NCBI GenBank assembly: GCA_002811645.1
Contig: PDIP01000091.1
Location: 1 to 40,068, forward strand
Length of the DNA: 40,068 nucleotides
Direction of reading: 5' to 3'
Source: Corallochytrium limacisporum Hawaii
Taxonomy: Eukaryota; Protista; Pluriformea
The notes under the pieces were generated by a model. That model was not told where the DNA came from. It did not search any database and saw nothing but the letters and a program-made list of their open reading frames with translations. Made by a program: the position numbers and the translations under genes. How positions within the stretch are numbered: position 1 is the first letter of the stretch; every line of letters begins with the position of its first letter. Below, in pieces: positions 1-40,068 of this stretch.

Positions 1-87
1 AATAGAAAATAGAAAATAGAAAAAAGAGAATCACTGCAAGTTCAACTGCAAGTTCACACACACTATCTCCTACACACCCACAAAATT
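1..87. repeat. Left terminal inverted repeat (partial)
   Basis: Exact reverse complement of 39730-39816. Contains (AATAGAA)n and a tandem ACTGCAAGTTCA x2 at 33-56. Confidence 0.92.
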
Positions 88-155
88 TAATTGATTTAAT
101 TTAGTTAAATAAATTAAAGTTTTTTTTATAGTTTAATCTATTTAAATCAATTAAA
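86..155 (-). terminator. AT-rich stem-loop after cob, at the inner TIR boundary
   Basis: TTTAATTGATTTAA (86-99) is a perfect inverted repeat of TTAAATCAATTAAA (142-155) and overlaps the cob stop codon. Function is inferred. Confidence 0.4.
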
Positions 156-1293
156 GTTTTAATAATTTGTTTTCTAGAACTCCTGAAACTGGTATTACTA
201 CTAAGAAATACGCGAAGTATGTTACTGTAGCAATTTGTCCAATTTCAACAAAAGGAGATTCTGGATGAAGTCCTCCAATTCATGTAAGAATTGCAAAGTT
301 AGCGACGAATAATCAGAATAATTTTCGTGAAATAGGTCGGAACGCATTAGATCGAATTTTACTTGTGTGAACGTAAGGTAAAATAAGTAAAATAAGAATT
401 GATCCAACCATAGCTAATACTCCAAGTCCTTTGTTAGGAATTGATCGAAGAATAGCATAAGCGAATAAGAAGTATCATTCCGGAACAATTCTAGCTGGAG
501 TTACAAGTGGTTGTGCAACAACGTAGTTATCAGGGTGTCCTAGTAAGTTAGGTGCGAAGAATACGAATGTTGAGAAGAATAAGAAGAATAGAACCATTCC
601 CATAATATCTTTAGAAGAGTAGTATGGTGTGAATGGAATCTTATCAATATTAGATTCTAATCCTGTTGGGTTATTACTTCCATATTGGTGAAGTGTTAAA
701 ATATGAAGAATAGTGAATAACGCAATAACAAAAGGAAGTAAGAAATGAATAGCAAAGAATCGGTTTAGAGTAGGTTGGTCAACACTGAACCCTCCTCAAA
801 TTCATTGAACAATTTCAGTACCAACAACAGGGATAGCCGATAACATATTAGTAATAACAGTAGCACCTCAGAATGACATTTGTCCTCAAGGTAAAACGTA
901 ACCAATGAAAGATGTTCCCATTAAAAGTAAAAATAGAACAACTCCAATAGCTCATACTAATTCTCGAGGTGATGTATATGATCCATAATACATACCTCGT
1001 GCAGTGTGAATATAAATTAGGATAAAGAACATAGAAGCTCCATTAGCGTGAATATATCGAATAAGTCAACCGAAGCTAACATCTCGCATAATGTGTTCTA
1101 CAGAGTAGAATGCAAGATCAACATGTGCGATATAGTGCATAGCTAGGAAGAAACCGGAAGCGATTTGAACAACTAAGATAATACCTAATAAAGATCCAAA
1201 GTTTCATAATGTACTAATATTAGCAGGTGTAGCATAGTCTACAAGTAAATCATTACCAATTCTAAGAATAGCTTGATTTTTTCGAATCATCAT
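151..1293 (-). CDS. cob: Apocytochrome b (380 aa)
   Basis: With TGA=W: [39 protein letters not shown] and [19 protein letters not shown] at 151-153. Confidence 0.98.
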
Positions 1294-1348
1294 AAATAAA
1301 TTATAAATGATAAATTGTAAAAATATCTCAAATAAGATTGAGAATATT

Positions 1349-1423
1349 TCAGGACAGGAGGAGTCGAACCTCCGAACTAAGGTCCCAAACCCTAGGCCGC
1401 AACCGCACAACGACAATATCCTG
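1349..1423 (-). tRNA. trnP: tRNA-Pro(UGG)
   Basis: Acceptor CAGGATA/TGTCCTG, anticodon loop TTTGGGA, T-loop TTCGACT. D-loop is atypical. Confidence 0.85.
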
Positions 1424-1441
1424 GATTAGTGTGACCAAAAG

Positions 1442-2020
1442 TTATTTTTGTCGTGACAATGCTTTTTTAGGATCAGTATGTGTTTGTTTTCATAATTCCT
1501 GAAAATTTTGGAATTGTGGTTGTGCTGTAGTAGTAAGCACAAGAGCTGCAACCATAGCAATTAATAATAAAATAGATGCAAGGATAACAGCAAAAGGGAA
1601 TTGATTGTAAAGTGCAATTCCAATATAATGTACTGGTTTAAGTGTAGAGATTAATGATGATCATTGTAATGAAACAGGTAAGAACATAGAATCTGATGAT
1701 AATGGAATAACAGCAGATCTAGTTAAAGTAAAGAAAAGGATCCCAAGTAAGAATCCAACAGGCAAGTATCGTGTAAGATTTTCATTAATTTCAATAGTTT
1801 TAATGTGTAGCATCATAACTACAAATAAGAATAAAATAGCAACAGCACCAACAGAAATAATTACAATTAGAGCAGCGATAAAATCGATACCTAAAAATAA
1901 GAATAAAGCAGTGGATGCTACAAAAGTAAGAATAAGTCATAGAACAGAATGAACTGGAATTTTTGAATTAATAACCATCAATGCAGAGAATAGTGCAATT
2001 GAGAAAAAGAATGCTAGCAT
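1442..2020 (-). CDS. nad6: NADH dehydrogenase subunit 6 (192 aa)
   Basis: KIPVHSVLWLILTF and VGAVAILFLFVVMML motifs. The ATG directly abuts trnR. Confidence 0.95.
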
Positions 2021-2093
2021 TAGGCAACTGAAGGATTTGAACCCCCATTTCATGGTTCGAAGCCATGCGTTCTACCATTAAACTAAGCAGCCT
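2021..2093 (-). tRNA. trnR: tRNA-Arg(UCG), the only Arg tRNA found
   Basis: Anticodon arm CATGG-CTTCGAA-CCATG. Confidence 0.93.
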
Positions 2094-2106
2094 GTACTAG
2101 TGTATT

Positions 2107-2188
2107 TCGGAGCGAAGGGACTTGAACCCCCATGAAAGAATTCAATGGTTCCTAAAACCACCGCGTCTACCAATTTCGCCACGCTCCG
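2107..2188 (-). tRNA. trnL: tRNA-Leu(UAG)
   Basis: Anticodon arm GTGGT-TTTAGGA-ACCAT with a long variable arm. Confidence 0.95.
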
Positions 2189-2209
2189 AACACAATAATA
2201 TGATAAGAT

Positions 2210-2282
2210 TGGAGAGAGGAGGACTTGAACCTCCAACCTTCACGATGCAAACATGCTGCACTACCAATTGTGCTATCTCCCC
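2210..2282 (-). tRNA. trnA: tRNA-Ala(UGC)
   Basis: Acceptor GGGGAGA/TCTCTCC with G3-U70; anticodon loop TTTGCAT. Confidence 0.93.
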
Positions 2283-2305
2283 TATTTAAAGTTAAAATAA
2301 TTAAG

Positions 2306-2376
2306 TTAGGGATAGATGATTCGAACATCTATCAACTCATCCAAAGTGAGCTGCCTTACCATTAGGCCAATCCCTA
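2306..2376 (-). tRNA. trnQ: tRNA-Gln(UUG)
   Basis: Anticodon arm GCTCA-CTTTGGA-TGAGT. Confidence 0.93.
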
Positions 2377-2396
2377 TTGGAGTATTGTAATATGAA

Positions 2397-2469
2397 TAAT
2401 CTCTGAGGGGATCGAACCCTCGACCTACGGTATGTAAGACCGCCGCTCTACCTCTGAGCTAAGAGATTA
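2397..2469 (-). tRNA. trnV: tRNA-Val(UAC)
   Basis: Anticodon arm GCGGT-CTTACAT-ACCGT. Confidence 0.95.
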
Positions 2470-2470
2470 T

Positions 2471-2530
2471 TAAAAATAAAAAAATAAAAATAATAAAAAC
2501 AATAAAAACAATAAGAATAATAAAAATAAA
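2471..2530. repeat. Low-complexity A-rich tract, (AATAAAAAY)-like
   Basis: Seen directly. It would be U-rich on the transcript downstream of rns. Confidence 0.6.
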
Positions 2531-3943
2531 TTCTGACATCAACACGTTCCCGTATCGGTACCCTGTTACGCCTTAAATCATGTACTCAATAACTTAAGGT
2601 ATAATAGATTAAGTAAAAGAATATCGATTATACACATAAGTCAAGATTCTTCGACCTTGGCGGGCAGTTAGTAGCCCCGAATTGTGGAATTCACCGTGAC
2701 GTGGTAATAAGCGATTACTTTCGATTCCAACTTTACTATTTCGAGTTTCAGCTATCGATCCGAAACTGCAATTTTTATGCTGTGATTGTTATAAGTAGCA
2801 CCTCTGTAGCCCTCTCTATCAAGGGCAAATTGATCTGTCTTAGTTCTCTAGGAATTCTGGTTAACTTATGTAGAGAAGAGTTAACCTACACCCTAATTTG
2901 GCCGAGAGTGGCGTCCGTTAAAGGATCTAACCTAACAACTTAGATCACGGACAGACGACGACCTTGCACCACCTGCGATTTATCATCCTAGATTATAATT
3001 GAGGTAAGATTTCTGGCGTGATTACCAATTAAACGAGATGCTCCACCGAGCATAATTCAGGCTCTCTATTCCTTTGGTTTTTCATCTTGCGATGGTAGTG
3101 GCCGAGCGAGGTAATAATGCGTAAACAACTCCTATTGATTTATTAAGTTCAATGTAGAAGTTTCCCAGAGTTGACAGCATGGACTATAAGGGTCACTAAT
3201 CCTCTTTGATCCCCATGCCTTGGTTGTAGTACGTAGGTATTGTGATGGAAGAAAACGTTAGTTTTTTGGCTGTCCCTCAGTTAAGATATTAATATGGCAA
3301 TAGAAAATCTATGGATTGTTAATCCCTATTTCCATCAAAATTGTGTGAAGTGAAAATAGCCATAAATATATCAAAGTTCTCGACATAGTTTCCAATGCAT
3401 TTAACTGCTAAACTTAAAGTAAATATCAACCGTTCAAATACCCATAAAATATATCCTATTTTTTCTTTGATTGCAATAAAATATTTGTTTAGGTTTCTGT
3501 AAAGTATTTCCAACCCGGAACGCTCGTATAATTCTAATAGGCATGAACCAGCCGTTTAACCGCGTCTGCTGGCACGGCAATTAGACGGTTCTAATAAGAG
3601 TGACTTTCATTTTAAGTAGTACTCTGTCAGTTATTCGTACGTTAAGCAGGATCAAGCTTTCGCTCATTGTCCAAAGTCCTTCACTGCTGCAAGATAAACA
3701 GGCCAGCTCTTTAAGCTGATGTGGGTGCTGAATCACCTAATCATTTAAGTCTATATTACAACTAACGGTCCCTTGTTTTGAGAAAAAAAGTATTAAATAT
3801 ATAATAGATTATCCCTTTTCTATTATCTCTATTAACAAGGTATTACTCACCCTTAAGCTGAATCTATATTTTAGATTCAAACAAGCATGTGTATTCTTTA
3901 ACGTAAGCCTTATTAGAGAGCCAGGATCAAGCTCAGTAGTATT
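2528..3943 (-). rRNA. rns: Small subunit mitochondrial rRNA (ends approximate)
   Basis: Minus strand carries GAGCTTGATCCTGGCTC, GTGCCAGCAGACGCGG, ATTAGTGACCC, ACTAACTGCCCGCCA and CGTAACAGGGTA. No anti-Shine-Dalgarno tail. Confidence 0.96.
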
Positions 3944-3963
3944 CAAAGATTATTATGTTTTAT

Positions 3964-4045
3964 TAGGATGGGCAGGACTTGAACCTACAACGTGAAACCA
4001 CAATGGTTTTACAGACCATCGCCAAACCAATTAGGCGTCCATCCT
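3964..4045 (-). tRNA. trnY: tRNA-Tyr(GUA)
   Basis: Anticodon arm ATGGT-CTGTAAA-ACCAT with a long variable arm. Confidence 0.93.
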
Positions 4046-4078
4046 TGCTTTTTATAGCTATTATAGCTGTTATAGTAG

Positions 4079-4537
4079 TTATGCCAAATTTGCAGGTAAT
4101 GCTTTTTCTTCAAAATGTTTTTGTGAAGGATAACTACCAATTACAACTTTAGAATTAAAGGAAGCTTTAATTTTTTTGGCAGTATATAATGTGGATTTAT
4201 TGTAATGTGGTGAAACAAAAACTCTTGCACCTCCTTTGTTAATTGAAGTTCAGTGGTCCGGTTTCCCCTTACCTTTTCCCATCATAGCTCCTAATGGTTT
4301 TTTAGTTAGTAATAAATTAGGAAAAGGCTGAATGAAAAATGAATATTGTTTCTTTCCACGTTTTTTTAAGGTTGATTTAGCAACCTTAAACATTAGTCAA
4401 ATAATTGAGTGAGGGATTTCTCTCCTTTTTGTTAGATACAGAAAAAAGTTAGCAATAGGAAATGAGGTGTTTGGTAAAGCAGTTTTTCGTTGTCGTTGGA
4501 ATAGTATTCGTTTTTTATTTTTAGGAGTATATGGCAA
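4079..4537 (-). CDS. rpl16: Ribosomal protein uL16 (about 152 aa, TTG start)
   Basis: FPNLLLTKKPLGAMMGKGKGKPDHW matches the uL16 motif FP....T.KP...RMGKGKG...W. Confidence 0.9.
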
Positions 4538-4680
4538 CTATAGTTGATAAATTATATATTATTAAATATTGGTGATAATTGAAATACTCCACCCTACCAC
4601 CCCTTACCAATAATTAATATGAAATTATAAAGTAATATAGTATTTCAATCATGTCAATTTTTAGTTTTTTCTTTTTATAA

Positions 4681-6666
4681 TTAAGATTTTTTAATAAAAT
4701 AATTAGAAATCTCTTGGGATGGTTTGCCGAGTTTTTTATGAGGCATAAGATGTTTCATTATAGCAGGTGTTCAGTCTAAAAAATCATCACCATTGTCATT
4801 AATATATTTTGGTGCATTTTTTATGTTATTTCCCACAATGTTTAAGCTATTCTCTTTATTATATTTGCCTTTAAGATCATCTATAAACTTAAAAAACTCA
4901 GATGATCAATCATTAGTTTTTTTATCAAATTGATAAAAAAATTTTATAACTTGTCATAGGTTAGTATTATATGTATCATCACTTGGTCTATAAACAGTAT
5001 GTTCTTTAGTTGGTTTGAGATAATTAGGGTTAATTGAAAATAATTGTGAAGATAATAATGCTAAATCAAAGTCAAATAAAGTTAATGGAAATGGTGAAAA
5101 AACGTAAAGATATTGTAACATAGCTTGATTATTAGGATTTTCAAAGATATGTTGTGTTCTATAATCTATTTTTTGTGTATTAATAGTTTCTCTTCAGTGG
5201 GTTCCTCCATATTCAGCAGCTAGATGTGCATGAGTTTTTATCATCTCTGTATCAAAAAATACAGGTGAAGGAGGTGTAAGACAATGCTTAAAAGATTTAT
5301 CTTCACCTCATGGGTCAACAGAGTAAGTATTTTGAAGAACATCACCAAAATACGGATATAGTGGATTAGTTCTAACAGGTAGTACTGTATGATCTTTATC
5401 ATTTAGAACAATATTATGTAATCGCATGTGAAGCATATAGGTTGGAATTCCTTCGTTGGTTACCATTTTACTTAACAATTGTAATGCTGGTTTAGTATCT
5501 GGTGTTTTTGTAAGTAGTGTAGATTTGGAAACAATAGAAGGAGGGAAATATTGGAAATTAAGGTTGACTGGCATAGTCTCTTTTAGATTGGGCTGCATAT
5601 ATTCATCTTGTCATCAAAATCCAGCCATACTATCTCAAAAAGCTCGAGAGATTCCTAATTGGTTATTAAAGTATTGTTTTAAATGGTTTGGTATTCCAGG
5701 TCTACCATCTGCTTTTTTATCTACAATATATTGTTGATCATTAATAGTAGGGTTTCCATTTTTTAACAAGATTTCTTTAATGCTTTCTTTATTAGGTCCG
5801 ACTTTATTATATTTCTTAGATTTGAAGCCGTCTTCAAGTCCGGGAATAGATTGTAAAGTGGGATAATAAAAATAACAATTAGACAGAAATTTTACAGGAA
5901 TCCACATAAAGTGTACTCCACTTTTAGAGAGTTGCATTAAGTGCTTGTACATAGCTGCAATTATCTGTGGGTTTTGTCCGCTTTTTTTCAAACATTGAAT
6001 TTCGTAATCAAACGGCTCCCTAAATGATTTCGGCTGAATTAAACAGGGCACTCATGTTCAATGTGGTGAGTAAAATGAGGATCCAATGATTGGTTCATCA
6101 TATCCTTTTTGAATTGGAAATGCCTTATAAAAGCGAGCCTTTAAAGGACCACCTCTAACAATAGGCAAAGTTTTAATATTAGAAAATATGTTATTTTGAA
6201 ATAAGTTATTATAATTATCAATTTTATAACTTATTTGGTAGTTATAACTAGCTTTTTTTCCTGTGTTACCCAACTGTTCATAAATACTATTCTGTTTTAT
6301 TCCTAAATAATTAGTTAAAACAGGAATAGGAGAATATAGCTCATCATTAGAAGTTGGATAAGCATTATATTTAACAGTAGCGTATTTATAATTAGAATTT
6401 TTTTCATTAAGTTGAAGAACCAAAAATAGTTTACCTTTTACTTCACTTAGTTTTATTGATGAATCAAAGGCAATAGATTTAGAAGTGTCTTCAGTAAATT
6501 TAGGTCAGAGAACATTATTAGCTTTTTGTAACTCTGAAGCAATTTTTCTATTCTTATCAGCAGTAACAATAGCTGCTTTTAAAGGAATAGGTACATAAGT
6601 ATCGGAACCGGCAACAAAATTAAATACAATAAGGAATGGCAATTTATCAGATGTATTATTTATCAT
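4681..6666 (-). CDS. Unidentified ORF661
   Basis: One uninterrupted frame with TGA=W, from ATG 6666 to TAA 4681. It joins the track ORFs 6058-6423, 5635-6051 and 5308-5598. No motif recognised. Confidence 0.85.
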
Positions 6667-6686
6667 CAAGAATTAATAGTAAAAAA

Positions 6687-6769
6687 CGAGAGGAGGGAGA
6701 TTCGAACTCCCGATGGTGTTACCCAACCCTTAGAAGGGGTTCGCAATAAGCCAACTATGCGATCCTCTC
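6687..6769 (-). tRNA. trnS: tRNA-Ser(UCU): serine-type body with an AGA/AGG-reading anticodon
   Basis: Anticodon arm AACCC-CTTCTAA-GGGTT, long variable arm and G73 discriminator. Closely similar to trnS(GCU) at 19091-19173. Confidence 0.92.
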
Positions 6770-6847
6770 ATTCTGTGTCTCTCCATAATAGTATTATTTT
6801 ATTTTAAATGATAATTGTATAGATATAAAATAAATAGATATTAAAAT

Positions 6848-7636
6848 TTATAAACCTGCTCAGAAGTAAACTGATAAATAAACTCCAATTCATGCAACAT
6901 CAAGGAAGTGTCAGTATAAGATAGCTGCTTCTGCTCCTTGGTGGTGATCAACAGTATAATGGTGTCATACTGCTCGCAGTAGTGCAACAAAGATAAATGT
7001 TGTACCAACAATCATATGGCATCCGTGGAATCCTGTTAAAGTGAAGAAAGTAGAACCATAAACACTATCTCTAATTGAGAATGGTGCTTCAAAATATTCG
7101 AATGCCTGAAGTAAAACAAAGATAGCACCTAGAGTGGCAGTAGCTGTTAGACCAGCAATAGTATCTGCTCGGTTACCAGCTAGTAATCCGTGGTGTGCTC
7201 ATGTAACAGTAGCTCCAGATGACAGTAGAATAATTGTATTCAGTAATGGAACTGAAAATGGATCGAAAATTTCTACTCCAGCGGGTGGTCATTGTGCTCC
7301 AATTTCAACAGTTGGAGAAAGAGATGAATGAAAGAAAGCTCAAAAGAATGAGAAGAATACTAAAGCTTCAGAAAGAACAAATAAAATGAAACCTAATTTA
7401 AGTCCTTTTTGAGTAACAAGAGTATGGTCCCCAAGGAATGTAGCTTCTCGTGTAATATCTCGTACTCATACGATAAATGTAAGAGTTAATAAAATAAATG
7501 CTAAAAAAGCTAGTAGTCCACCTTCTAAAAATCGGTGGAATCACATAACTAATCCTGTTGTGAACCCTAAAGCTGCGAATGATGCAACCATTGGTCATGG
7601 TGATGGTGTAACAAGATGATAAGGTTGATGTAAAAT
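6848..7636 (-). CDS. cox3: Cytochrome c oxidase subunit 3 (non-ATG start: ATT 7636 or ACG 7639)
   Basis: [35 protein letters not shown] and YWHFLDVAW. In-frame TAA at 7652-7654 just upstream. Confidence 0.97.
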
Positions 7637-7735
7637 CGTATATTTTTTATATTATCAATATTGAAAGTGATATAAATATTGATATAGATGTTACTAATAG
7701 AAAAAAAATAAAAATATTTATATAAGTATTTTTAT

Positions 7736-8479
7736 TTATTCTTCGAATTGTGCAGTTACTCAAGCAATATAGTCATTAACTTTAGCTGCTTCAATAACAA
7801 TAGGCATACCAGAGTGTTCAACTCCACATAATTCATAACATGCTCCAGCTAGTAGAGTAGGTCGTTTAACTAAGAATGATGATTGGTTAAGTCGTCCTGG
7901 AATGGCATCAATTTTAACTCCTAAAGAAGGAACAGATCATGCATGTAATACATCAGCAGATCCAACAATCATTCGGATATGTGTATTAACAGGAACTACA
8001 ACTCGGTTATCAACTTCGATCATTCGTAGATCAGAGTCTTCTAAGTCATCTTCTGCTACCATATATGAATCGAATTCAAGTCCTTCTCCGTCTTCATTAA
8101 AATAATCAGAGTATTCGTATGATCAGTATCATTGGTGTCCTACAGCTTTAATAGTGATAATAGGTGTAATACATTCATCCATAAGATATAAAAGTTTGAA
8201 TCTTGGGAATGCAATAGCAACTAGAACTAAAGCTGGAGAAATTGTTCAAATAACCTCGATAAGTGATCCGTGTGTCATATGTTTTTCTGAATAAACTTTA
8301 TTAGTATTATTATACTTGATAATAATTCGCATCATTACTCAGAATACTAATGTAACAATACCAACAAGGTAAAACATAATTTGGTCGTGTAAAGATAAGA
8401 TTTCTTCCGCAATAGGTCTGGCTGGATTTTGGAATCCTAGCGCTCATGGTGTTGGGATATCAAATAAAAAATTAAGCAT
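7736..8479 (-). CDS. cox2: Cytochrome c oxidase subunit 2 (247 aa)
   Basis: [36 protein letters not shown] and CuA motif [12 protein letters not shown]. Confidence 0.98.
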
Positions 8480-8576
8480 CTCAAAAAATTAACCATTGTA
8501 AATAATTTGAAGAAAAAGAAATATTAAATTTTCTAATTCTTGTTAAAAATAAACTTAAAATAAATAAGCAATTAAG

Positions 8577-8606
8577 ATATAATAGATAAGATATTATCTA
8601 TTATAT
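8577..8606 (-). terminator. Perfect 13-bp hairpin downstream of cox1
   Basis: ATATAATAGATAA-GATA-TTATCTATTATAT, about 15 nt past the cox1 stop. A processing or stability role is inferred. Confidence 0.5.
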
Positions 8607-8621
8607 GTATATATGTATATA

Positions 8622-10283
<1,662 letters not shown>

Positions 10284-10340
10284 TTATTAAGCTGGAGTCA
10301 TGTTAATTTTTATTAAGTTAATTTTAATGGGTTATGTTAA

Positions 10341-10414
10341 GGCGAACTAGAGGATTTGAACCTCTGTCTATAAAGCCACAATCTATTGTTCTAACCAACT
10401 AAACTAAGCCCGCC
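10341..10414 (-). tRNA. trnH: tRNA-His(GUG)
   Basis: Anticodon loop TTGTGGC; encoded G-1 opposite C73. Confidence 0.92.
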
Positions 10415-10475
10415 CAGATGTTTTTATTTTTTATTTTGTTTTTTTATTTATTATATTTTAACAACTATGTGTTAA

Positions 10476-10718
<243 letters not shown>

Positions 10719-10750
10719 TTATAAAATTCTATAAATTAAAATTAGTTTAT

Positions 10751-12817: not shown

Positions 12818-12820
12818 ATA

Positions 12821-12891
12821 GTGCAAGAGCTGGAGTCGAACCAACATACAAGCGTGATGAGCGCTCTGGTTTACCATTAACCTATCCTGCA
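12821..12891 (-). tRNA. trnM: tRNA-Met(CAU), possibly the initiator
   Basis: Anticodon arm GAGCG-CTCATCA-CGCTT; acceptor TGCAGGA/TCTTGCA. Confidence 0.85.
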
Positions 12892-12905
12892 AAAAAGTCA
12901 ATAAT

Positions 12906-12978
12906 AGACTCTGGAAGGACTTGAACCTTCAACCTAACGGTTAACAGCCGTGCGCTCTACCGATTGAGCTACAAAGTC
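12906..12978 (-). tRNA. trnN: tRNA-Asn(GUU)
   Basis: Anticodon arm ACGG-CTGTTAA-CCGT. Confidence 0.94.
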
Positions 12979-12997
12979 TAAATATGGTTATAATGGT

Positions 12998-13068
12998 CGA
13001 GGACAACGGGAATCGAACCCGTATCAGCCGAGAGACAGTCGGCGATTCTACCATTAAACTATATCCCC
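12998..13068 (-). tRNA. trnD: tRNA-Asp(GUC)
   Basis: Anticodon arm GCCGA-CTGTCTC-TCGGC. Confidence 0.94.
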
Positions 13069-13109
13069 AGTTAAAAGAAATAAAATTAAGTCAGCAATAT
13101 GTGAAATTT

Positions 13110-14084: not shown

Positions 14085-14107
14085 TTTTTATAATAAAAAA
14101 TTAAAAA

Positions 14108-14871: not shown

Positions 14872-14872
14872 T

Positions 14873-25786: not shown

Positions 25787-25809
25787 TTATATTCTTTTAC
25801 ACACTATTG

Positions 25810-25893
25810 GTTAGGTTACCCAAGTGGTTACGGGGCTTGTTTTGAAAGCAGGTATGGTTTTTCCATGCGGAGGTTCGAATCCTTCACCTAACG
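25810..25893 (+). tRNA. trnS: tRNA-Ser(UGA)
   Basis: Anticodon arm CTTGT-TTTGAAA-GCAGG with a long variable arm. Confidence 0.93.
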
Positions 25894-25916
25894 ATTTATA
25901 TTACCCTGTTTTATTT

Positions 25917-25989
25917 GGATCTATCGTCTAGTTGGTTAAGACAGCTCGCTTTTAACGAGTCAACCTGGGTTCAAGTCCCAGTGGATCCC
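25917..25989 (+). tRNA. trnK: tRNA-Lys(UUU)
   Basis: Anticodon arm GCTCG-CTTTTAA-CGAGT. Confidence 0.92.
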
Positions 25990-26147
25990 TTTTATTCTAA
26001 TTTATTTTTTAAATTTTTATATCACCTATAAGCTATTTGCTTTGGTAATATTTATTATTTACTAGTTGCATCCATTTTTATTAAAGTTAATACATTTGTG
26101 ACTTATTTCTGTTTATTCAGGAATAAGGGTTGAAATATTGTTTTTAG

Positions 26148-29100: not shown

Positions 29101-30254
29101 ATGATAATCCTATTATAATTGATATTTTTTTATCTATTTATTTAATAGGATTAAAAGGCAATCTAAGTTTTATAATGCATCTTTGATTAGATAACATAAA
29201 ATATCTTAGACCTGGTGTCTTATCTGAATTAGACTTATCTAAAAAATATGGTAATGATTTACCAGTTCTGCGACTTCATGTACGTGATATTGTAAAAAAC
29301 AAAAAAATTATTAAAGATTTTAATAGATCTGACATTAATGATGTTAAAAAAGCAATTAAAATGCTTTCTAAACCAAATTATTCTTATAAAGCAAAAAATA
29401 ATCATGAATTAGCAAGTATAAACAATATTTTTACAAATGTTACAACTACTAATAAGACCGCACCTGAATTGGTTCTTCCAATTTTACCTGTTAATTTAGC
29501 TTTTCCTATTATTAAGGAATATCGAGATTTATCTACTACTTATAAATCAAAACAACCTGAAATTTTTAATCCATTAGGTATTACCTCTGTTAAAAAAGAT
29601 GAGAAAAAACTACCCTGAAACATTGAAGAGAAAAGACTTTTACCTGTTTCATTAATTTCTTCTCTTGCTAAAACTTTTGATGATAAACCAATGCGAAATA
29701 AGTTTGTAGGATCAGGATTATTTTTTTCCTTGACTACTTACCACACTTGATTAAATAATAATCTTAAACCAGCCCAAAAAGCTAAATCTATTTTAGAATC
29801 TCAATTAGAAGATATCCATAAAGGTAAAAAAATTATAATTAATGATTACCTGGAAAATAAATGATTATTTTATGCTGATCAAGTTACACCTACTAAATTT
29901 CGATCTGATATTTTTAAGAATCATTCTAAAACATGTTATGATTCACAAAATATTTTATTCTCTTACGCCAATGTTATTGAATATTTTCGAAAAGATTGAA
30001 TTAATTATCAATTAATTACTAATTCAGTTAATAAGAAAATGAAAAATAAAAAAGTATATTTTAATATAAATTTGACTGAACTTGAAGACTATTTATCTAA
30101 ACAACTAAGCAGAAAGAACCTTGATTCTGAAAAAACTGCTAAAGATAAACAAGTAAATAAAATAGGTGGGCTAAAAAATACTTATGCTGAAACTTCAATT
30201 AGACATTCAAATTATAAAAAAAATAAACAAAAGAATGATAAATTTATAGTTTAA
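26148..30254 (+). CDS. Unidentified ORF1368
   Basis: Seven track ORFs share one frame and are separated only by TGA. No in-frame TAA or TAG over 4107 nt. Flanked by trnK and trnI. Confidence 0.88.
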
Positions 30255-30268
30255 CCTTAAAATAACAA

Positions 30269-30302
30269 AATCGTTCATAACCCATAAGAATTTTGAACGA
30301 TT
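30269..30302 (+). terminator. Stem-loop after ORF1368
   Basis: AATCGTTCA ... TGAACGATT, a 9-bp inverted repeat. Confidence 0.4.
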
Positions 30303-30305
30303 CTA

Positions 30306-30377
30306 AAGCCCATAGTTTAACGGTTAGAACGATCTGTTGATAACGGATTAATGGTGGTTCAATTCCTCCTGGGCTTA
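30306..30377 (+). tRNA. trnI: tRNA-Ile(GAU)
   Basis: Anticodon arm ATCTG-TTGATAA-CGGAT. Confidence 0.94.
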
Positions 30378-30455
30378 ATTTATAACCTATTTTTATATTC
30401 ACTAATAAGCTAAAATAACTCTTTTGCTAAACTAAATAAAATAATTACTACGACG

Positions 30456-33400
30456 ATGAAATTTATTCTTGAATTTTATACAAAAATGCTTGACTCCTTT
30501 AAGGAAGGTAATCTTTTTTCTCTTATGTCTAGGTATCTGAAAAGAAAATATAATTTCAAAAAATTCGAATCTCACACTTCGGCATTTTTTGAAAAGGCTA
30601 CTGATGACTCTCAAAATTGAGTATCATTAAAAGAAGTTTATAGAGAATGAGTACCTTTTACACATTCTACTTCTAGAGTTGTAGATTTCTTTTATCCTAA
30701 GCCATCTACTTATTGAAATATAGCCAATTTATCAAAATATCTAGAGAGTAAAACAAATAAAAAGTTATGAATTTATTATGTGACAAAAGTTGTTATTTCA
30801 GGTGGTACACATAAAGGAAGAATTATTTTCTACTTTCATAATTTCGATAGACGGAAAAATTGAAGCTTAACACCCTTTATTATTAAAAGACAAGATCTTT
30901 CAGGGACACCAGAATTAAAATTCGGGTATTTTAAGTCACCAACAAAGAAAATAAATAACACAGAAAAAAAGTTTCTTAGACAAATTCACTTATTTCAATC
31001 TTTAGATAATATTAAAAATTTAAATTCGTTTTTTAATCTTTTTGATAACAAACTTCAACTTATTAACATTGTTGCTTACAGTAATACAATAAATGACCTA
31101 TATCCAATCTTTTCAACTTATTTACCAGTGTTCTTAAATCAAATAAATAAATTTACTAAATTTTTTTTATTTGATTACATTTTAGAAAAAAAAGGAGATG
31201 TAAGTTTTCTGTTCAGTAATTTAGACTTTACTGAAACAGCTACTCCAAATCCTTTACTAAATTTCAATTCTGATAAAGATACAATTTATATCTTAGATTC
31301 CGTTTCTCCTAGATACAAAGGACTTTCAATCGATGTATTTCATTTTATTTTTGACCACCAATCTTATTTAAGAATTAAAAATGAATGAGATAAAATTGTT
31401 AAACGAAGCCACATTGTATCATTTCTATTAAGGGGTAAATACGTAAAATACAAACTTTTATTCAAAAACCCACCTATGTTAACTAAATATATTTTATTAT
31501 CACCCAACTCTAATAATTTTTCTTTCCCTATTACATTTTTATTTTTTTCAATTTTTATTTTGCCAAAGTATAAAGAATTTAAATCGAAATATGAACTAGA
31601 TAAAAATTTATATAGTATTCATTCTAAACGATTTAATAATACCACAATCCAGCTTCAAAATAATCAAACATTTCTGCGAGACTTTGAAACTATTATTGCC
31701 TCACTAAAAAGTAGCAAAATAGAAGAAATTATTAATAAATCAATGCCATTTTCAACTATCCATGTCAGAAAATTACATGAAACTTTATTTAATAATACAA
31801 CTAATAAAAAATACCCAGATCCTAACGACCTTTATATTTTTTATTCATTCTGAACATCTTTAAGCGTAGGACAAATAAAAATAGCACCCAACACTTATTT
31901 TGAAATTGGATCATACCCAACGGCAAAAAATGATAAAATTTATAAATATGATATTAATTCTTTTTATCCATTCTTATTAGTTTTTTTTAAATACCCCTTT
32001 GTATCTAAATTTCAATATTCTGCCACTAATTATGAAAGGAGGACTTTTATTCAATTTTTATCGACTCTTAAAGATTCTAAATTAAATAACATGTTCGGCT
32101 ATTACTTAGTAACTAACCTTAAAAAACCAAATAATTTTGAAACAAAAGTAGATTCACAATTTGATTTCCCAGGTAAAAATACTCCAAGTACAGAATCTTT
32201 TTGAATTCCATTCTCAGACTTGGTCTATATTACTAAATTAGGTTACCAATGAGAATCTAACTATCAATATTTATTTGATTACCAACCTTTTCAAAATTAC
32301 CAACTAATTTTCCAATTATATAATATGCGACAAAATAATTTTGAAAATATTTTGAATGTAAAAGCGTTACTAAATCAATTCTCCGGTCTTCTAGTTCGCT
32401 CTAGAAGTACATTAGTACCCGGAACTTCAATTAAACCTTTAACACGAATCTCTTTACCATGAGAATGAAGACGCTTATTTGATATCTCAATTGTAAAAAA
32501 CCCAAGATATTTTAATACTATTTCATTTTATTTTTGACAATACTTTATTATTGAGACACTAATAAATATTTTAAAAAATGATAAAAATGAACAAGATACT
32601 CTAAGTATTTTGAATCATGCTAAATCCACAATTGAAGACCTACTAGAACAAAATAGACGATTTGACAAAGATAATATAAATGATGACATGTTAGATTACC
32701 TATATTCAATTCTAGAAAAATGTGAAAATGAACGAATTTTAAGGAAAGATAAAGAATATTTAAACTTTAATCCAGATTTCTTTAAATACTATTACATTTC
32801 TACTCATTTACAAACTGTTATTCAATTATTATTTAGAAGAAAAAAATACTCATATCTTATTACTGATAATAATAGTCCGTTATACAATTTAAAAAAGAGA
32901 CAATCTTTTTCAGGAGTTAATCAACATTCGGATTTAAATAAATTTATTTTAAAACAATCCCCTATCTTTTTATTCCTGACAATTATTTATACAAATTGAA
33001 ATAATGTAGATCCAATAAACGCATCTGGATTCCAAATGTATTCTTATGCTCGTATCTTTTTACATCAAATTAAACGAGCCTATAGACAGCATGTTATTTA
33101 TTCAGATGTAGACTCAATTGTTTTGAATAAACCTTTAAATCCTTTATTTAAATTTGAAGAACCTTTAACTTGAATAATAAATAATAGTAAAAGCTTACAA
33201 AAACTAACTAAGTATGACACTGAAAAAGAAAATTTTTATGATAACTGAAACCAATTTAAAACTAAAGAGGTTCAAATTTTAACATGCCCTAATATGCAAC
33301 AATTAAATAGTAAACAATATATTAATATTGAATCTGATAATAAAAGATTTTCTGCTAAATTAGGAACATTTAAAAATGAAAAACTCAGAAAAAGTTGAAT

Positions 33401-33851
33401 AACTGATTATCAATATAACAATTCAAACTATAGTATTAACAAAGATTCTTTATTTTATTTTAATAGAATGCTAACTTATGGACATAAACAGTATTCTCTT
33501 TCATGAGCTTTTAAAGATAAAACACAGGTGCATACAAAATTCTCAGGCGCTAATATTGAAAACGCTGGAATTATTGACACATTCCCAGATGAATTTCAAA
33601 AATGAACAACATTCTGAAAATATGTATCTTCCAATGTAAAAAAATTAAAAATTGCTAATGGAAAGTGACAAAAGGATAAAGTAGATAAATTATTAAAAGG
33701 AATCGAAGAAAATTTCGAAAAACAAGACTTTGACCCAGAATTTGAATTAACAAATAATGGAAAATACGTCCTATCATTTAACACATATTATATAATGAAA
33801 AACTATATAATTACTATCAATTTTACACCTAATAAACTAAAAACAGATTAA
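30456..33851 (+). CDS. dpoB: Protein-primed family B DNA polymerase, divergent (1131 aa)
   Basis: One frame with motifs in the expected order: FYFHNFD (ExoII-like), YDINSFYP (motif A, 31947-31970), KALLNQFSG (motif B, 32361-32387), SYAR, YSDVDS (motif C, 33099-33116), LGTFKNE and KQY. Confidence 0.9.
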
Positions 33852-33893
33852 GAATAACACTCTCTTATTAATAAGAACAGGTGTTATTCTTAA
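33848..33893 (+). terminator. Hairpin overlapping the polB stop codon
   Basis: TTAAGAATAACAC / GTGTTATTCTTAA, a perfect 13-bp stem with the inner palindrome TCTTATTAATAAGA. Confidence 0.55.
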
Positions 33894-33897
33894 ACCA

Positions 33898-33942
33898 GTC
33901 GGAAAGAGTAATGCAATTGGGTTCAAGTCCCATCTCCGACCA
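33898..33942 (+). ncRNA. tRNA-like minihelix (acceptor stem and T-arm only)
   Basis: GTCGGA/TCCGAC stem and TGGG-TTCAAGT-CCCA T-arm at tRNA spacing. Only about 12 nt replace the D, anticodon and variable arms. Confidence 0.55.
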
Positions 33943-33984
33943 TGAGGCGCTTACCCTAAATAATAGGTGGGTGCCTCATATCCA

Positions 33985-36215
33985 CATAATCACTTTAGTA
34001 TTTCAGTACGTTTTAATTTGAATGATGTAACACTTAATTATTATTATTAGAACTACAAAAGTAGCCAATATATTCAACAGGGAAAGGAAACTTCCATAAC
34101 TCTTAATAGAAAATAAAAATTATAACTCAAGTATAGGCGATAGAAAGAGTTACCGCTTACCATTTAAATAATATAGTTATTATTTAAAAGTAATCCAAAT
34201 TTTAGCTAAAATGAATCATCATATCAATAGTGAAAAGTACTGTGAAGGAAAAATTAAACAAAACTGAATTAAAGTCAGATAATAATATCTTACCTTTTGC
34301 ATCATGAGTCAACAAATTCAAATTAGAAGCAAAATAATTATTGCAATTAATTTATTATAAGTTTTTTATTTGATACCCGAAGACATGTGAGCTATAGTTT
34401 TCCTGTTTTAAACTCTTCTAACTTAGAAGAAATTAAGAGAACGAACCAGTGACTTCTGCAATAGTCTTGGATGAGGAAACTATAGAGGTGAAATTCCAAT
34501 ACGAACATGTTGATAGCTGGCTCCCAAAGAAAATAATATTAGTTATAGAAACTATTTGACTTAATTTTTCTTTAAACCTAACTACTGCGGATGCGGGCCC
34601 TAACCGGTTACAATTTCGTGGTAACGTAATAAGGTTTATTTTATCATTGTTTACTTGGATATCGGGCGACCAGGTCCCTTATCAAATTGGAAACAGCCAT
34701 TTATACCAGTATAAGTCTTCTATATTTCGCAACTTTTAAGGAAAAAAGTTCAATGTTTTACAATAGATAGGCCCGCAGTCAGCCACTCTTTTGAGAAAGC
34801 GTTATAGCTCGATCTAAATGAATACTTTTTCTTAAAATATTTGAGAATTTCGAAATTACTCTTACTGTATACTTCTATTTGGGCATTTAATGTTTATTAT
34901 ACTAATATCTTAGTAACACTAATTTGACCTAATTGTTAATTTATTGCAATTTGAGCAAATTATATTACATATAATTTATTTACATTAAAGTGATGATGTT
35001 GATATAAGTTTTTTTCATTTATTATGAGTCGAAATTTTAGAAGTTTAGACACGTTTCTAAAAGAAGAATTCCCAAATAGAATTCTTCTTATTTGCTCTTA
35101 GGTACCAGTATTTTTTCTAAAGAATTACTATTTACAACGTTTCACCTAACTCTAGAAAATTATGACTTCAGGTTTAATCACCCATAAGGAACTCGGCAAA
35201 TTTTTATTGGGATAAATTTTTTTTCCAGATTTTATATAATTAATTTTTTACTAATTTTTTATTGAACAAATAATTAATTGTAAATACCTTTATCTCATTT
35301 TTATATGTATTTATTGTGCGACTGTTTACCTAAAACATAGGTAGGAGATAACGTTCAAATTTACTAATTCCTATCGTATCCTTCCAAATGGTTCATTTAT
35401 AATTTGATTTTTAATTTTGAAAGTCAAAATAAGGATAACCCAATGGAGGGCCTAACTCTGAGGCTCCTAAGGTAGCGAAATTCCTCGGCTGTTAATTGCA
35501 GTCCCGCATGAAGGAGGCACGACACATAAACTGTCTCAGGGGTGAGTCCAAGCTAAATTGAACTTTAGGTGCAAATTCCTGTTTTAACTAAAAGTCGAAA
35601 AGACCCTACGAAGCTTTACCGTTACCTGTCATCTTAATCTGTTTCATGTTCTTATAGAATAGGATGTGAATCTCTTTCTCCTTGAAATACATCCATCTTT
35701 ACACTTATGATACTTTTGATTGGTAGACAGTTTGCCTGGGGCTGGCTGCTATTATAATTCAAAATAGCTGAACTATGGTTGTTCTATTAATGATATTACA
35801 GCCTGACTGCTTGAATCTGTATTCATGCAGGAACGTAAGTTGGTCATATTGATCCGGATTCATTGTTGGATTCTGTTTCCGCTCAACCGCGAGAAGCTAC
35901 TCTAGGGATAACAGGCTACTCTCGGGGGAGAGACCTTATTGATCTCGAGGTTGGGTTCCTCGATGTCGGCTGACCTCATCCTAGGGGTGGAGAAGCTCCT
36001 AAGGGTAGGACTGTTCGTCCTTTAAAGAGGTACCTGGCTGGGTTCATTACGTCGCAAGACAGTAAGGCTTCTTCCTTTAGTTTATTCTTATTTAATCAAT
36101 TGAACTTTTGTACGAAAGGACCTGGTCATCTATTAGCAGTTTTATACATTTCAAGCTATAATTTCTAATTGATTCACCTGAAGAAATTTTGATTCAATAT
36201 AAATCTTTTTTGGAA
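33985..36215 (+). rRNA. rnl: Large subunit mitochondrial rRNA (ends approximate)
   Basis: GTACTGTGAAGGAAA, GACTGTTTACCTAAAACA, CCTAAGGTAGCGAAATTCC, GGGATAACAGGCT, CCTCGATGTCGGCT and the sarcin-ricin loop GTACGAAAGGACC. No introns seen. Confidence 0.96.
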
Positions 36216-36257
36216 TACGTTCTTCTTTTCTTTTTCTATCTTTCTTTATTTTTTTTA

Positions 36258-36330
36258 GACCCGGTCGAATAATTGGTCAATTCACATCTCTTTCACGGAT
36301 GAAATCTAAGTTCAATTCTTAGCTGGGTTA
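36258..36330 (+). tRNA. trnE: tRNA-Glu(UUC)
   Basis: Anticodon arm CATCT-CTTTCAC-GGATG. Confidence 0.93.
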
Positions 36331-36361
36331 TATTTAATCTATTTAGTCTATTTAGTCTACA

Positions 36362-39300
36362 ATGATGAAATTTAAATATATTTTACATAATAGTTATCGT
36401 AATATTATTATAAAAAACTATTTTTATTACCTTACCTACAATTTACATATATCTAAACTAGCTCGTTCTTTAAAAAATCCTATAGGCTATTTTAAATATC
36501 ACAACCTTTTATCTATTTCTAAATTTTTCACTTTTCGGCCTGTATCTGTTAAAACACAGATATCACCATTACTTCGAAAAGTTTCTAAATACGGTATTAA
36601 GAAAAATAAACGATATTTAAATTACAATAATAAATCAATATCTCATGGACGGAAAAAAATTGTTAATTTTCAATTTAAAAGATTACTCTATTGAAATATG
36701 TTTCAAACAGCTCCGCTTTCTGTTGATTCAATAATTGCAAATTTCTATATTTCTCTTAATGATATAAAAAGTTATAAATATAAACAATTAGTCAATGATT
36801 TACAAAATGATAAATATACATTAAATCAGAATAATGCAATACTTTATTCAATACTATGAAATAAATACCAGTATTCTGATTTATTTCTACAAATTCATAA
36901 TTGATATGCTAAGTCTTTACAATCTAATAAATGACATGCATTTGAAAAGCTACAACATAATATTATCTCACCTCATAATTTTTATCTATTTAGAAAGATT
37001 TTTGTTTTTGTTTTAAATGCAATACCTTATGATTTAGAAACAAAACATTCTATTGTGGTGGCTAATAACTATGCTACAATTGTACTAATGAAAAAACCTA
37101 AATTTTCTGATTATTATTACAAAAATAATCAGAATGCTCTTTTAATTTTCATTTTATCATATTTTATTCATATGCATGTTTATTTAACATTAATCTTATT
37201 CTGTAAAAAAAATGAATACAAAAAAAATAAAGTTCCATTTTATAATATGCTTGAACTATTTTCTCCTGTATTCTCTAAAACAGAATTTGACTTAAAAATG
37301 TCTATCGAAGGAAAATTAATGTATAATCGCGTAAAAGACTATATTGAAAAAAATAACTATTCTTATTCTTTAACCAGATATGATCAATACTGCAATTCTA
37401 TCCAATATTGAACTATAGATAAAAGCAATGCTGATAAACAAATCACAAATAAATATTTTTCATACTTAACAATTAAAGATATGTATCAAATTTGGCCTAA
37501 AGCTTCATTTGTACCTCTTATGTTTTTCCTAGCAGTAAATGATTTTGGTCATCTAGTATCTAACATCCAAAGTGGAAACAGAACACCGGATTACATTTCA
37601 CCAGATACCAAATTACATAATATAATGATTTACCAGAGACAAATTTATGATAAAAAACCAAAACTGTCAACTGTCATTAATTTGCCAAAATTTAATCATA
37701 TCTACGATACTTTACAGCATGGCTCTAATACACTTAGAAATAATACATATATTTCTTCAATTAGAGATTACAACATACGGGAAAAATATACATTATCTAC
37801 AAATATTTATCAGTTTTCTCATTCACGATATACGTCAACACCACCCTGATTTCTGTATGGTCCCTATATAAGCCATTTATTCTCATCATCTGAAAACATA
37901 GGAGGAGAACGAGATGCAGCAAGTGAATCATATACAGCTATTAAATACCATTTATATAGTGAGCCTCAGTTTGAAGTAAATAATTGAAAGTTTCAACCAT
38001 TATTTTTCCATCTAAATACTATTATTCCCCTATTAAGATTAGAAGATACTAAACATATCTTTAATCTATTTCTAAATTCAATTCAATTATCTAAAGTTAC
38101 AATAGGGAAAGACACTAAGGGTGCAGCTTCTATCTATTTAAATTTTGATCTTAACAGACCAAGATTTAAAGAAGCCTTAGACCTACTTGTCAAATACCAA
38201 CTTCTATCAGTTGATGAAATTCAAATAATTTGACTCTCATTCTTGAAACTTTCAATGTATTGAGTAGAATATGAATTTAATTCAATACTAAAGGAACGTA
38301 ACCATTATGCAGAAGATTATGAAATTCATTATAGATATGCATCTGGGAGAAGCAATAATGATATTGAAGTTAACTCTAATTTATTTCCGGTTATTAAATA
38401 CAAACGAAGATTTGGTACAGAAACAGAAAGGTTCATAAATACAATTAATTACGATTACTCAGAGTATGAAAAAGCTTCAGTAATAGACCGACAATTAGGT
38501 ATGTGAAGAAACACTCCTTATTCACCTCTTATTCTGAATAAAATTATTAAGCACACATTTTATTCAGAATGAAACAATGATAAATATGATATTTATAAAG
38601 CTAGTTCTATTCAACCGGACATGCTTTCTAAATCCAATATAAATTATTTCATCCCATTTTTGCCAACATTACCTATCTTACCACAAAAACTAACTGGAAA
38701 TACTATTCTCTTACGAGAGAATACAAAAGCTATTCAATTACAATTCTATCTTGTAAATAAAAAATCAAATTATTTTCCTTATTTTTTGAATACTGCTTCA
38801 CAATCTCCTTTGGCTACTACTGCTTTCTTTTATTACAACCAATCTATTAATAATAAAGAAGTTTATCATCACAATATGACAGAAGATTGACACGATTTAA
38901 TTAAACGCTTTAATCGAGGAGAACTTAATTTAGCACAGTTATCTACCTTGGATTATGCATCCTGAATAACTGAGCGGGCGAAAAGAATTCCCTCACGACT
39001 TGGTATGAATCAGCTATATATTAGAACAGTAGATGGCTCAAGAGAAAACCTTAATACCTATCCAAGTAAAGCTGATGATATCTCTTCTGAAGATCTAGGC
39101 TTCGTCAAGACTTTCCGCCCTTACCTTACCACTCAAGGATGAAGATCAAGAAAAGATAATATTGATACTCTTCAAGGACTAATCAAAATCGATAATCGTT
39201 TAACAAACTACGATTTGTGAAATGACCGGTGAAGAGTAAAAGGATTTATCAAACCTGGTTATGAATTATATTACTTACATAATTATTTGATTAAACATGG

Positions 39301-39574
39301 CAAACCTATAAAAAGGAATAATGATTTAAACTATAATAGAATAAACCATTATGATAACGGACGATACATTAATAGTAGTGAATCTGAAATTAAATCATTA
39401 TTTTACAACTTTTCTTTACCTGGTAAAAAGAATCCAGATTTTACTCATAGATTAAGAAATATATTAATTAGTAAAACATGGGCCAAGCATTTTAACTTAA
39501 AATCCTTTGCCAAGTTAAAGAAAAACAAAACAACTAAAAAGCCAACAATTGATAAAACAAAACCAACACAATAA
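36362..39574 (+). CDS. Unidentified ORF1070
   Basis: Five track ORFs share one frame and are linked through TGA. No in-frame TAA or TAG over 3213 nt. Basic N- and C-termini. Confidence 0.88.
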
Positions 39575-39590
39575 CTTAAAACAATTTTAC

Positions 39591-39734
39591 AAATTCCCCC
39601 CTCCTGTGAGGCAGCATTGCTGTGAATTATTATAGTTAGATTTAGCGCTTGGGCGACTGATCCTAGATTATGACTAAAATAATTCGGTGGGCCTTTTCCC
39701 CAAGGATGGGCCCCCCTCCAGGAGGGGGGAATTT
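39591..39734. other. GC-rich multi-stem structured element at the inner edge of the right TIR
   Basis: Perfect 16-bp closing repeat AAATTCCCCCCTCCTG (39591-39606) / CAGGAGGGGGGAATTT (39719-39734) enclosing further stems. Confidence 0.7.
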
Positions 39735-40068
39735 TGTGGGTGTGTAGGAGATAGTGTGTGTGAACTTGCAGTTGAACTTGCAGTGATTCTCTTTTTTCTA
39801 TTTTCTATTTTCTATTTTTCTCACTCTTTTTTACTTTTTTTACTTTTTTTATATCTTTTTTCATTTTTACACTCTTTTTTATTACCTTTTTATTACTTTT
39901 TTATTACTTTTTTATTATTTATACTGTTTGAGGTTCATTATTTATCATTAATTATACCATATTTATCCTCTCGAACCACCTTTATCTCCCCAAATACTAC
40001 CGACCGTACACCGGTACATAATACGGTCTAACGTATTTCTCTCTTCTAACAGCTCTCTCCATACTCAC
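39730..40068. repeat. Right terminal inverted repeat / telomeric region
   Basis: 39730-39816 mirrors 1-87. The remainder is pyrimidine-rich non-coding sequence, presumed to be the part missing from the left end. Confidence 0.85.

Follow-up and report, generated by a model that had tools for sequence, protein, structure and literature searches.

The window analysed here, 40,068 nucleotides long, is the entire mitochondrial contig (C286; PDIP01000091.1) of the 24.1-Mb, 286-contig assembly of Corallochytrium limacisporum Hawaii, and it raises the question of how the ends of a mitochondrial chromosome are maintained and what part is played by the large open reading frames (ORFs) of no recognised kinship (ORFans) that accompany a family-B DNA polymerase gene (polB) on it. 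The contig is identified as the mitochondrial genome because it carries rns, rnl, 23 tRNAs and an oxidative phosphorylation (OXPHOS) gene set typical of holozoans. PolB and the three ORFans, ORF661, ORF1368 and ORF1070, together comprise 12,702 bp, or 31.7% of the contig. The initial annotation of this sequence reported ORFans of 661, 1368 and 1070 codons amounting to about 12.7 kb; the frames are confirmed, and the total includes PolB. We lean slightly towards the reading that this is a single linear mitochondrial DNA (mtDNA) derived from an old linear-plasmid integration, the ends of which are maintained by PolB while nuclear enzymes do the bulk of the work.

An 87-bp exact inverted repeat had been described at both ends of the contig. 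The repeat is indeed exact, positions 1-87 and 39730-39816 being 100% complementary, but it is not flush with both ends, since 252 further bases lie beyond the right arm. Contigs from public sequencing runs were compared over positions 34100-40068. In run X1, probably the source sample, a single 337-nt contig spans 39730-40042 at a depth of 303, versus 94.6 for the right arm and 157 for a 4.9-kb left-arm contig. This is near the sum of both arms and about twice the arm depth, the doubling that had been proposed as a check of linearity. The left-arm contig enters the repeat at 39730, and its loose letters are the reverse complement of window positions 88-117. Because both arms enter one repeat contig of two-copy depth, the true terminal inverted repeat (TIR) measures no less than 313 bp, or 339 bp if counted to the contig end; in the assembly its left copy is cut short, the 87 bp being the part kept by the assembler. 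The TIR is non-coding. The repeat contig ends at a Nextera adapter, X1 contains no sequence leading on from it, and none of the other contigs of the 286-contig assembly holds the end sequence. The short-read contig graph and the depth support a linear chromosome whose TIRs span some 340 bp or more; a hairpin end or a short unassembled spacer is possible at the terminus. In a second strain (run X3), 2-bp and 12-bp tandem expansions occur within the TIR, at 39753-39772.

PolB appears to be a divergent family-B polymerase of the organellar type, with a predicted activity and priming mode. The piece containing motif A matches PF03175 with an E-value of 8.4e-6 and 25.4 bits, 0.4 bit below the cut-off of 25.8, and was the only match (23.1 bits) in a genome-wide search with this profile. 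The expected motifs follow in order: an ExoII-like FHNFD (residue 127), motif A YDINSFYP (498), motif B KALLNQFSG (636), YARI (864) and motif C YSDVDS (882). The canonical motifs of protein-primed family-B polymerases (pPolB) are KxxxNxxYG and YxDTDS; in PolB, the tyrosine of motif B is replaced by serine and the threonine of motif C by valine. The polymerase, initially described as intact, is so with respect to its open frame and both catalytic aspartates, but not to motifs B and C. The motif order is the same as in the dpoB ORFs of two other loci, L024 and L061, with pairwise scores that are not significant; these loci are metagenomic mitochondrial contigs with canonical plasmid-type dpoB frames, partly split, beside cox1. 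The distance between motifs A and B is 138 residues, versus about 123 in the L024 dpoB, and that between B and C is 246 residues, about 140 longer than in the L024 and L061 dpoB; judged by spacing only, both intervals are spacious enough for TPR1 and TPR2 insertions. A word search with the motif-A piece returned no scored match, and none among phages or PDB sequences. The polymerases of fungal plasmids carry an N-terminal terminal-protein domain, for which little room is left in PolB because the ExoII-like motif already lies at residue 127; no ORFan piece matched a known terminal protein in Pfam, PHROGs or NCBIfam. The gene also contains an exact 20-bp direct repeat (31336-31355 and 32519-32538).

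At the level of sequence, the features of an invertron-type linear mtDNA are present: both arms run into a single repeat of 313 bp or more, and the PF03175 piece is accompanied by motifs A, B, YAR and C in order, the 5' terminal protein being predicted. The originally proposed linear TIR chromosome with a plasmid-type family-B polymerase is thus supported by the repeat contig and the PolB motifs. The outward-facing gene arms were also borne out by the strand map: every gene at 151-18907 lies on the minus strand and every gene at 19002-39574 on the plus, with the sole exception of tRNA(CAU) (24167-24238). ORF1368 and polB are interleaved with the resident genes of the right arm, and ORF661 sits 24 kb from PolB on the opposite arm.

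PolB and the ORFans are well adapted to their host chromosome. All four frames are open when TGA is read as Trp, and in base-shuffled copies of the contig the longest frame was at most 171 codons. They lie on the sense strand of their arms and start 20 (ORF661), 159 (ORF1368), 79 (PolB) and 32 bp (ORF1070) past the preceding tRNA, as had been noted from the sequence, an adjacency that is partly expected with 23 tRNAs spread among the genes. Their relative synonymous codon usage correlates with that of the resident genes with rho of 0.82-0.88 in frame, versus 0.32-0.75 out of frame; the TGA:TGG ratios are 11:1, 12:1, 20:0 and 16:2; and AGR codons make up 0.15-0.23 of Ser codons, versus 0.17 in core genes. 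Since codon use follows the resident genes, a long residence is indicated, although arrival from another mitochondrion with TGA as Trp would explain part of this likeness. Furthermore, copies of resident genes, of falling identity, are found in the 5' regions of the foreign frames, namely cox1 (26182-26216, in ORF1368), nad2 (in polB) and an ORF528-like segment (36408-36474, in ORF1070), so these frames have recombined with resident genes. In charge composition the ORFans (K+R 0.10-0.12, D+E 0.08-0.11) are like PolB, with ribosomal-type ORFs at K+R 0.15-0.22, and each contains at most one hydrophobic stretch.

The ORFans escaped identification by every approach employed. The library searches used pieces of 43-196 residues between TGA codons, with AGA translated as Arg, which limits their sensitivity. 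Scans of the stop-free pieces of all ORFans against Pfam, PHROGs and NCBIfam gave nothing significant; comparisons with viral and metagenome contigs, with phage and plasmid records, and with the ORFs of 80 other mitochondrial loci gave no match; and exact look-ups of ORF pieces and of atp9 found no record. The largest set, 1.84 billion representatives, was searched by phmmer with one 189-residue piece of ORF1368 only and yielded one weak match (E 3e-5, six stretches). Single-sequence AlphaFold models of two ORFan pieces reached predicted local distance difference test (pLDDT) scores of 36 and 49; fold searches with the second piece (ORF661) gave no E-value below 0.01 and template modelling (TM) scores of at most 0.52, and the ESM Atlas offered no usable match for ORF1070. 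An Omp85-type assignment of the ORF661 piece (ESM Atlas 0.87-0.88) was rejected as below the reliable range.

A T7-like RNA polymerase (RNAP) is the usual partner of a plasmid PolB. PF00940 finds only the nuclear enzyme, and with a profile built from nuclear (30) and phage (4) RNAPs, which contains no plasmid-type RNAPs, the full-length ORFans score no better than shuffles; the same profile test dismissed loose look-alikes of T7-RNAP motifs in ORF1070. Weak fold resemblance to poxvirus Rpo147 (root-mean-square deviation above 16) and the likeness in size of ORF1368 and ORF1070 to two-subunit RNAPs were both discarded, as the catalytic motif is absent. The ORFans contain no D-x-D-G-D motif of multisubunit RNAPs and no Walker A, LAGLIDADG or GIY-YIG pattern.

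The nuclear genome encodes a Pol gamma (C285, 2065 aa) with intact exonuclease and polymerase motifs, as well as a T7-like mitochondrial RNA polymerase, which over the scored region shows 100% identity to the EukProt entry Clim_evm4s2. Bulk replication and transcription of the mtDNA therefore need no mtDNA-encoded enzyme, and the role of PolB is most plausibly confined to the ends. The Pol gamma gene (L096:741-6938) is unusually long, with an extension of about 550 residues past the polymerase domain at the C-terminus. The undescribed maintenance system suggested in the initial annotation loses much of its appeal in this light, since the intact nuclear enzymes leave no need for new bulk replication and dpoB with extra ORFs has precedents. 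The accompanying proposal of a domesticated system with the ORFans as partner proteins is so far unsupported as well: they show no homology or fold tie to PolB, are scattered over the chromosome, and in the case of ORF1070 show omega of about 1.1.

The latter value comes from a comparison of strains. Contigs of run X4, which is guessed to be RNA, cover most of 37503-39657 (ORF1070) and rnl, and run X6, also guessed to be RNA and identical in sequence to the window, covers 39435-39588. These contigs fit transcription of ORF1070, but read-through from rnl or DNA carry-over could also produce them. The variants common to runs X3 (at low depth) and X4 mark a second strain, in which 2651 covered bases of ORF1070 carry 16 non-synonymous and 6 synonymous changes, with 6.3 synonymous changes expected under neutrality (omega about 1.1, confidence interval 0.4-3.4, from two strains and 22 single-nucleotide polymorphisms, SNPs) and no stop codon. 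SNPs are some four to five times as dense in ORF1070 as in rnl (p 0.003). Lack of transcription or neutral evolution of the ORFans had been named as grounds for abandoning the original interpretation; for ORF1070, contigs compatible with transcription were found and strong constraint was not. Runs X3, X5 and X7, labelled as other organisms, and three marine metagenomes (X8-X10) contain the same mtDNA or a relative of it.

The favoured explanation can be outlined as follows. Long ago, an invertron-type linear plasmid or virus-like element would have recombined into the mtDNA and supplied both the ends and polB; the host-like codon use and the cox1 and nad2 copies at the 5' ends fit this picture of long residence and recombination. 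Judging from the layout, two long transcripts would run outward from the centre and be cut at tRNAs, the cuts also releasing the foreign ORFs. Nuclear Pol gamma and mitochondrial RNA polymerase, the genes of which are present, would perform bulk replication and transcription, and the mtDNA-encoded PolB would solve only the end problem, by protein priming. Because the PolB N-terminus leaves little room before residue 127, the primer protein would be encoded separately, with ORF661 or ORF1368 as speculative candidates; the other ORFans would be element-derived passengers, kept open under weak amino-acid constraint. Several observations weigh against this explanation. No ORFan has homology to any plasmid or virus, and the ORFans are not clustered at the ends; PolB falls just under the Pfam cut-off, deviates in motifs B and C and has long insertions, so that its activity is a prediction; a one-base insertion in the second strain alters the last 13 codons of ORF1070; and the absence of detectable amino-acid constraint on this ORF leans the same way, with low power and for one ORF only. 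A bolder version, in which the ORFans and PolB are the working remains of an unfamiliar virus-like linear element that replicates or protects the ends, one ORFan being a terminal protein of a new class and the others new folds, is considered unlikely.

The same weaknesses can be turned into an explanation of their own, a possible but doubtful one, in which a linear chromosome with TIRs would keep its ends by hairpins or by recombination through nuclear Pol gamma, PolB and the ORFans being remnants, decaying or selfish, that take no part in maintenance. The deviant motifs B and C, the omega and raised SNP density of ORF1070 and the intact Pol gamma all suit this explanation, as do the linear mtDNAs with t-hairpins in yeasts (PMC3105423) and the hydroidolinan hydrozoans that kept TIRs after the loss of polB (PMC5633667). 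It accounts poorly, however, for the persistence of four open frames of 661-1368 codons, fully host-like in codon use, in a genome rich in AT and for the retention of both PolB catalytic aspartates, and the 22 SNPs are compatible with omega of 0.4. Little credence is given to the opposite extreme, a complete, domesticated machine of viral origin made up of PolB and the ORFans, on which the organelle would depend, for example for transcription, packaging or replication. That one third of a compact genome is devoted to these frames, which are co-oriented, placed after tRNAs and host-adapted, would agree with it, and so would the ORF1070 contigs in a probable RNA run and the lack of a homolog of the ORF1368 piece among the 1.84 billion representatives; the missing RNAP signal over shuffled controls and the missing catalytic and nuclease patterns listed above, the lack of visible constraint on ORF1070 and the presence of nuclear enzymes nevertheless speak against such a machine.

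Two further explanations dissociate the ORFans from the ends or dispense with the ends altogether. It is very improbable that some ORFans are native mitochondrial genes, for example for ribosomal proteins, inflated past recognition and unrelated to linearity: basic ORFs of 688, 331 and 528 codons on the same contig likewise escape Pfam and NCBIfam, no clear mitochondrial-type S3 or S4 is found in the nucleus, and the N-terminus of ORF1070 resembles that of ORF528, but the charge composition of the ORFans is that of PolB rather than of ribosomal-type ORFs, they have no match in the 80 mitochondrial loci, and ORF688, ORF331 and ORF528 are better candidates for the missing proteins. Very unlikely, too, is a circle-mapping molecule that has an inverted repeat plus a small single-copy spacer missing from the assembly, its linearity then being an assembly effect. 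The left contig end does lie in a low-complexity tract and the TIR contig does stop at an adapter, but no sequence leads onward in X1, no other contig carries the end sequence, polB and the outward-facing arms fit linear forms, and linear mtDNA is found in other unicellular holozoans (PMC7194472).

The genetic code of this mitochondrion was read from alignments to the 80 other mitochondrial loci, the AGR codons of the query being masked. On 21 conserved columns, AGA stands at 11 Ser, 4 Ala, 3 Thr and 0 Arg positions; no conserved Arg column uses AGR, and nad4 alone agrees. The Arg identity assigned by ARAGORN to the tRNA with the UCU anticodon was rejected in view of its long variable arm and 82% identity to tRNA-Ser(GCU). 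Given the column counts and a tRNA(UCU) copied from tRNA-Ser(GCU), the reading of AGA as Ser is well supported by sequence comparison: the codon is placed on Ser columns and a cognate tRNA of predicted Ser identity exists. AGG, too rare for column counts, probably also means Ser, and AUA probably stays Ile. TGA as Trp, noted initially, holds, but the code is not plain table 4, as AGA encodes Ser. AGR as Ser is known in bilaterians, glass sponges and calcaronean sponges (PMC5633667), and the green-algal cases described in PMC6821328 and PMC12574857 are read as Ala. AGA as Ser and TGA as Trp are shared with the bilaterian and sponge codes; Corallochytrium differs in being a unicellular holozoan with a full-length tRNA(UCU) next to its 82% identical paralog, and no report of AGA as Ser in a unicellular holozoan was found in the literature searched. 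ACN codons are common and mean Thr, yet no tRNA-Thr gene was found on the contig, and this tRNA is likely imported. The tRNA(CAU), the only gene opposing its arm, shares 76% identity with tRNA-Ile(GAU) and probably serves as the AUA-reading tRNA-Ile.

The coordinates of all features are collected in Table 1. Among the resident genes, ORF688 (10751-12817, minus) and ORF331 (19179-20174, plus) are further large basic ORFs of about 688 and 331 codons that the initial annotation left out of its count, possibly inflated ribosomal proteins. In ORF528 (22568-24154, plus), an internal segment weakly matches rps2-like ORFs from other mitochondria (E 0.056), and the end is presumably rps3-like, judged by a motif; the name tatC is likewise assumed from a motif. 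ORF688, ORF331 and ORF528 have no Pfam or NCBIfam match. The nucleus carries second S7 and S11 genes, which are probably the mitochondrial ones; a search of the nuclear genome found no clear mitochondrial-type S3 or S4. The region 39595-39740 folds with a raw value of -72.3 kcal/mol, and the stem-loop within it is a candidate end or processing signal of the right-arm transcript.

Table 1. Features of the mitochondrial contig of C. limacisporum, from left to right
Feature	Position	Strand	Evidence or remark
Left TIR, inner part; outer ~250 bp missing from assembly	1..87	.	Exact repeat, run X1 contigs
Left-arm resident genes: cob, nad6, rns, rpl16, cox3, cox2, cox1, atp9, ORF688	within 151..18907	-	
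Left-arm resident genes, continued: nad1, rps12, nad3, probable rpl6, nad2, probable tatC, atp6, atp8, tRNAs	within 151..18907	-	
ORF661	4681..6666	-	Soluble; 20 bp after tRNA-Ser(UCU)
tRNA-Ser(UCU), long variable arm, likely decoder of AGR as Ser	6686..6769	-	82% identical to tRNA-Ser(GCU), E 3e-15
Arm divergence point, candidate bidirectional promoter region	18908..19001	.	Suggested by gene orientation only
Right-arm resident genes: ORF331, nad4L, nad5, ORF528 (rps3- or rps2-like), nad4, rnl, tRNAs	19002..36330	+	
tRNA-Ser(GCU), probable source of the UCU tRNA	19091..19173	+	Paralog
ORF1368	26148..30254	+	5' end with 35-bp in-frame cox1 copy, 34/35 identical
polB, divergent family-B DNA polymerase, organellar/viral type, 1131 aa (predicted)	30456..33851	+	PF03175 match, motif order
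nad2-derived 43-bp segment near PolB 5' end, from 16712-16755	30511..30553	+	93% identical, E 2e-10, other frame
tRNA-like minihelix consisting only of acceptor stem and T arm, with a hairpin on either side, separates polB from rnl	33898..33945	+	
ORF1070	36362..39574	+	N-terminus weakly ORF528-like; 3' two thirds under contigs of probable RNA run
Long stem-loop between ORF1070 stop and TIR	39595..39729	+	Fold of 39595-39740
Right TIR, at least 313-339 bp, two-copy depth	39730..40068	.	Run X1 contig 39730-40042, depth 303

The general layout of TIRs, dpoB and unassigned ORFs is already known from several lineages. The linear mtDNA of Candida subhashii has dpoBa, dpoBb, orf756 and invertron-like telomeres with a demonstrated 5' terminal protein (PMC3105423); shared with it are, in addition to a probable unit linear form, inverted terminal repeats, dpoB and an extra unassigned ORF, whereas dpoB is in two ORFs there and PolB is one divergent 1131-aa frame here, accompanied by three large ORFans and a 5' protein that is only predicted. 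The linear mtDNA of medusozoans, with polB and a second ORF, has been attributed to linear-plasmid integration (PMC5633667) and provides another holozoan mitochondrion with TIRs and polB; its TIRs usually contain pieces of cox1 and there is one extra ORF, whereas in Corallochytrium the TIR is non-coding and 12.7 kb of foreign DNA is spread over both arms. The mF plasmid-mtDNA recombinant of Physarum polycephalum includes nine plasmid ORFs (PMC10048350) and shares a linearised mtDNA with TIRs, a family-B polymerase, several unassigned ORFs and recombination yielding hybrid ORFs. The mF plasmid, however, encodes a recognisable single-subunit RNAP, exists in free form and integrates only in some strains, whereas in Corallochytrium neither an RNAP nor a free plasmid contig was found, and the host-adapted genes are interleaved with resident ones. 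Linear mtDNAs with this OXPHOS core and some ribosomal protein genes also occur in Ministeria, Capsaspora and Amoebidium (PMC7194472, PMC7027106); their gene tables, which were compared rather than the sequences, list no dpoB and give 52 unassigned ORFs for Capsaspora and at least 24 for Amoebidium. The mtDNA of Corallochytrium stands apart in having so large a foreign share, spread over both arms, with no recognisable RNAP and a divergent PolB. No description of a Corallochytrium or other pluriformean mitogenome was found in the literature searched, which covered few subscription journals.

Apparently, plasmid-driven linearisation of mtDNA has here occurred independently in a lineage close to animals, foreign DNA taking up an unusually large part of the chromosome (32%). 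The reassignment of AGA to Ser, with a tRNA traceable to tRNA-Ser(GCU), offers a clear parallel to the code change of animals and a likely mechanism for it. Since Corallochytrium grows axenically (PMC5560861), the question of a terminal protein is directly testable, and the answer could identify the primer protein that is unknown for most linear mtDNAs. If the ORFans are passengers, this genome would be a new example of a known architecture combined with a code change; if they and PolB maintain the ends, a distinct system of mtDNA end maintenance would be at work in a relative of animals that is amenable to genetic work.

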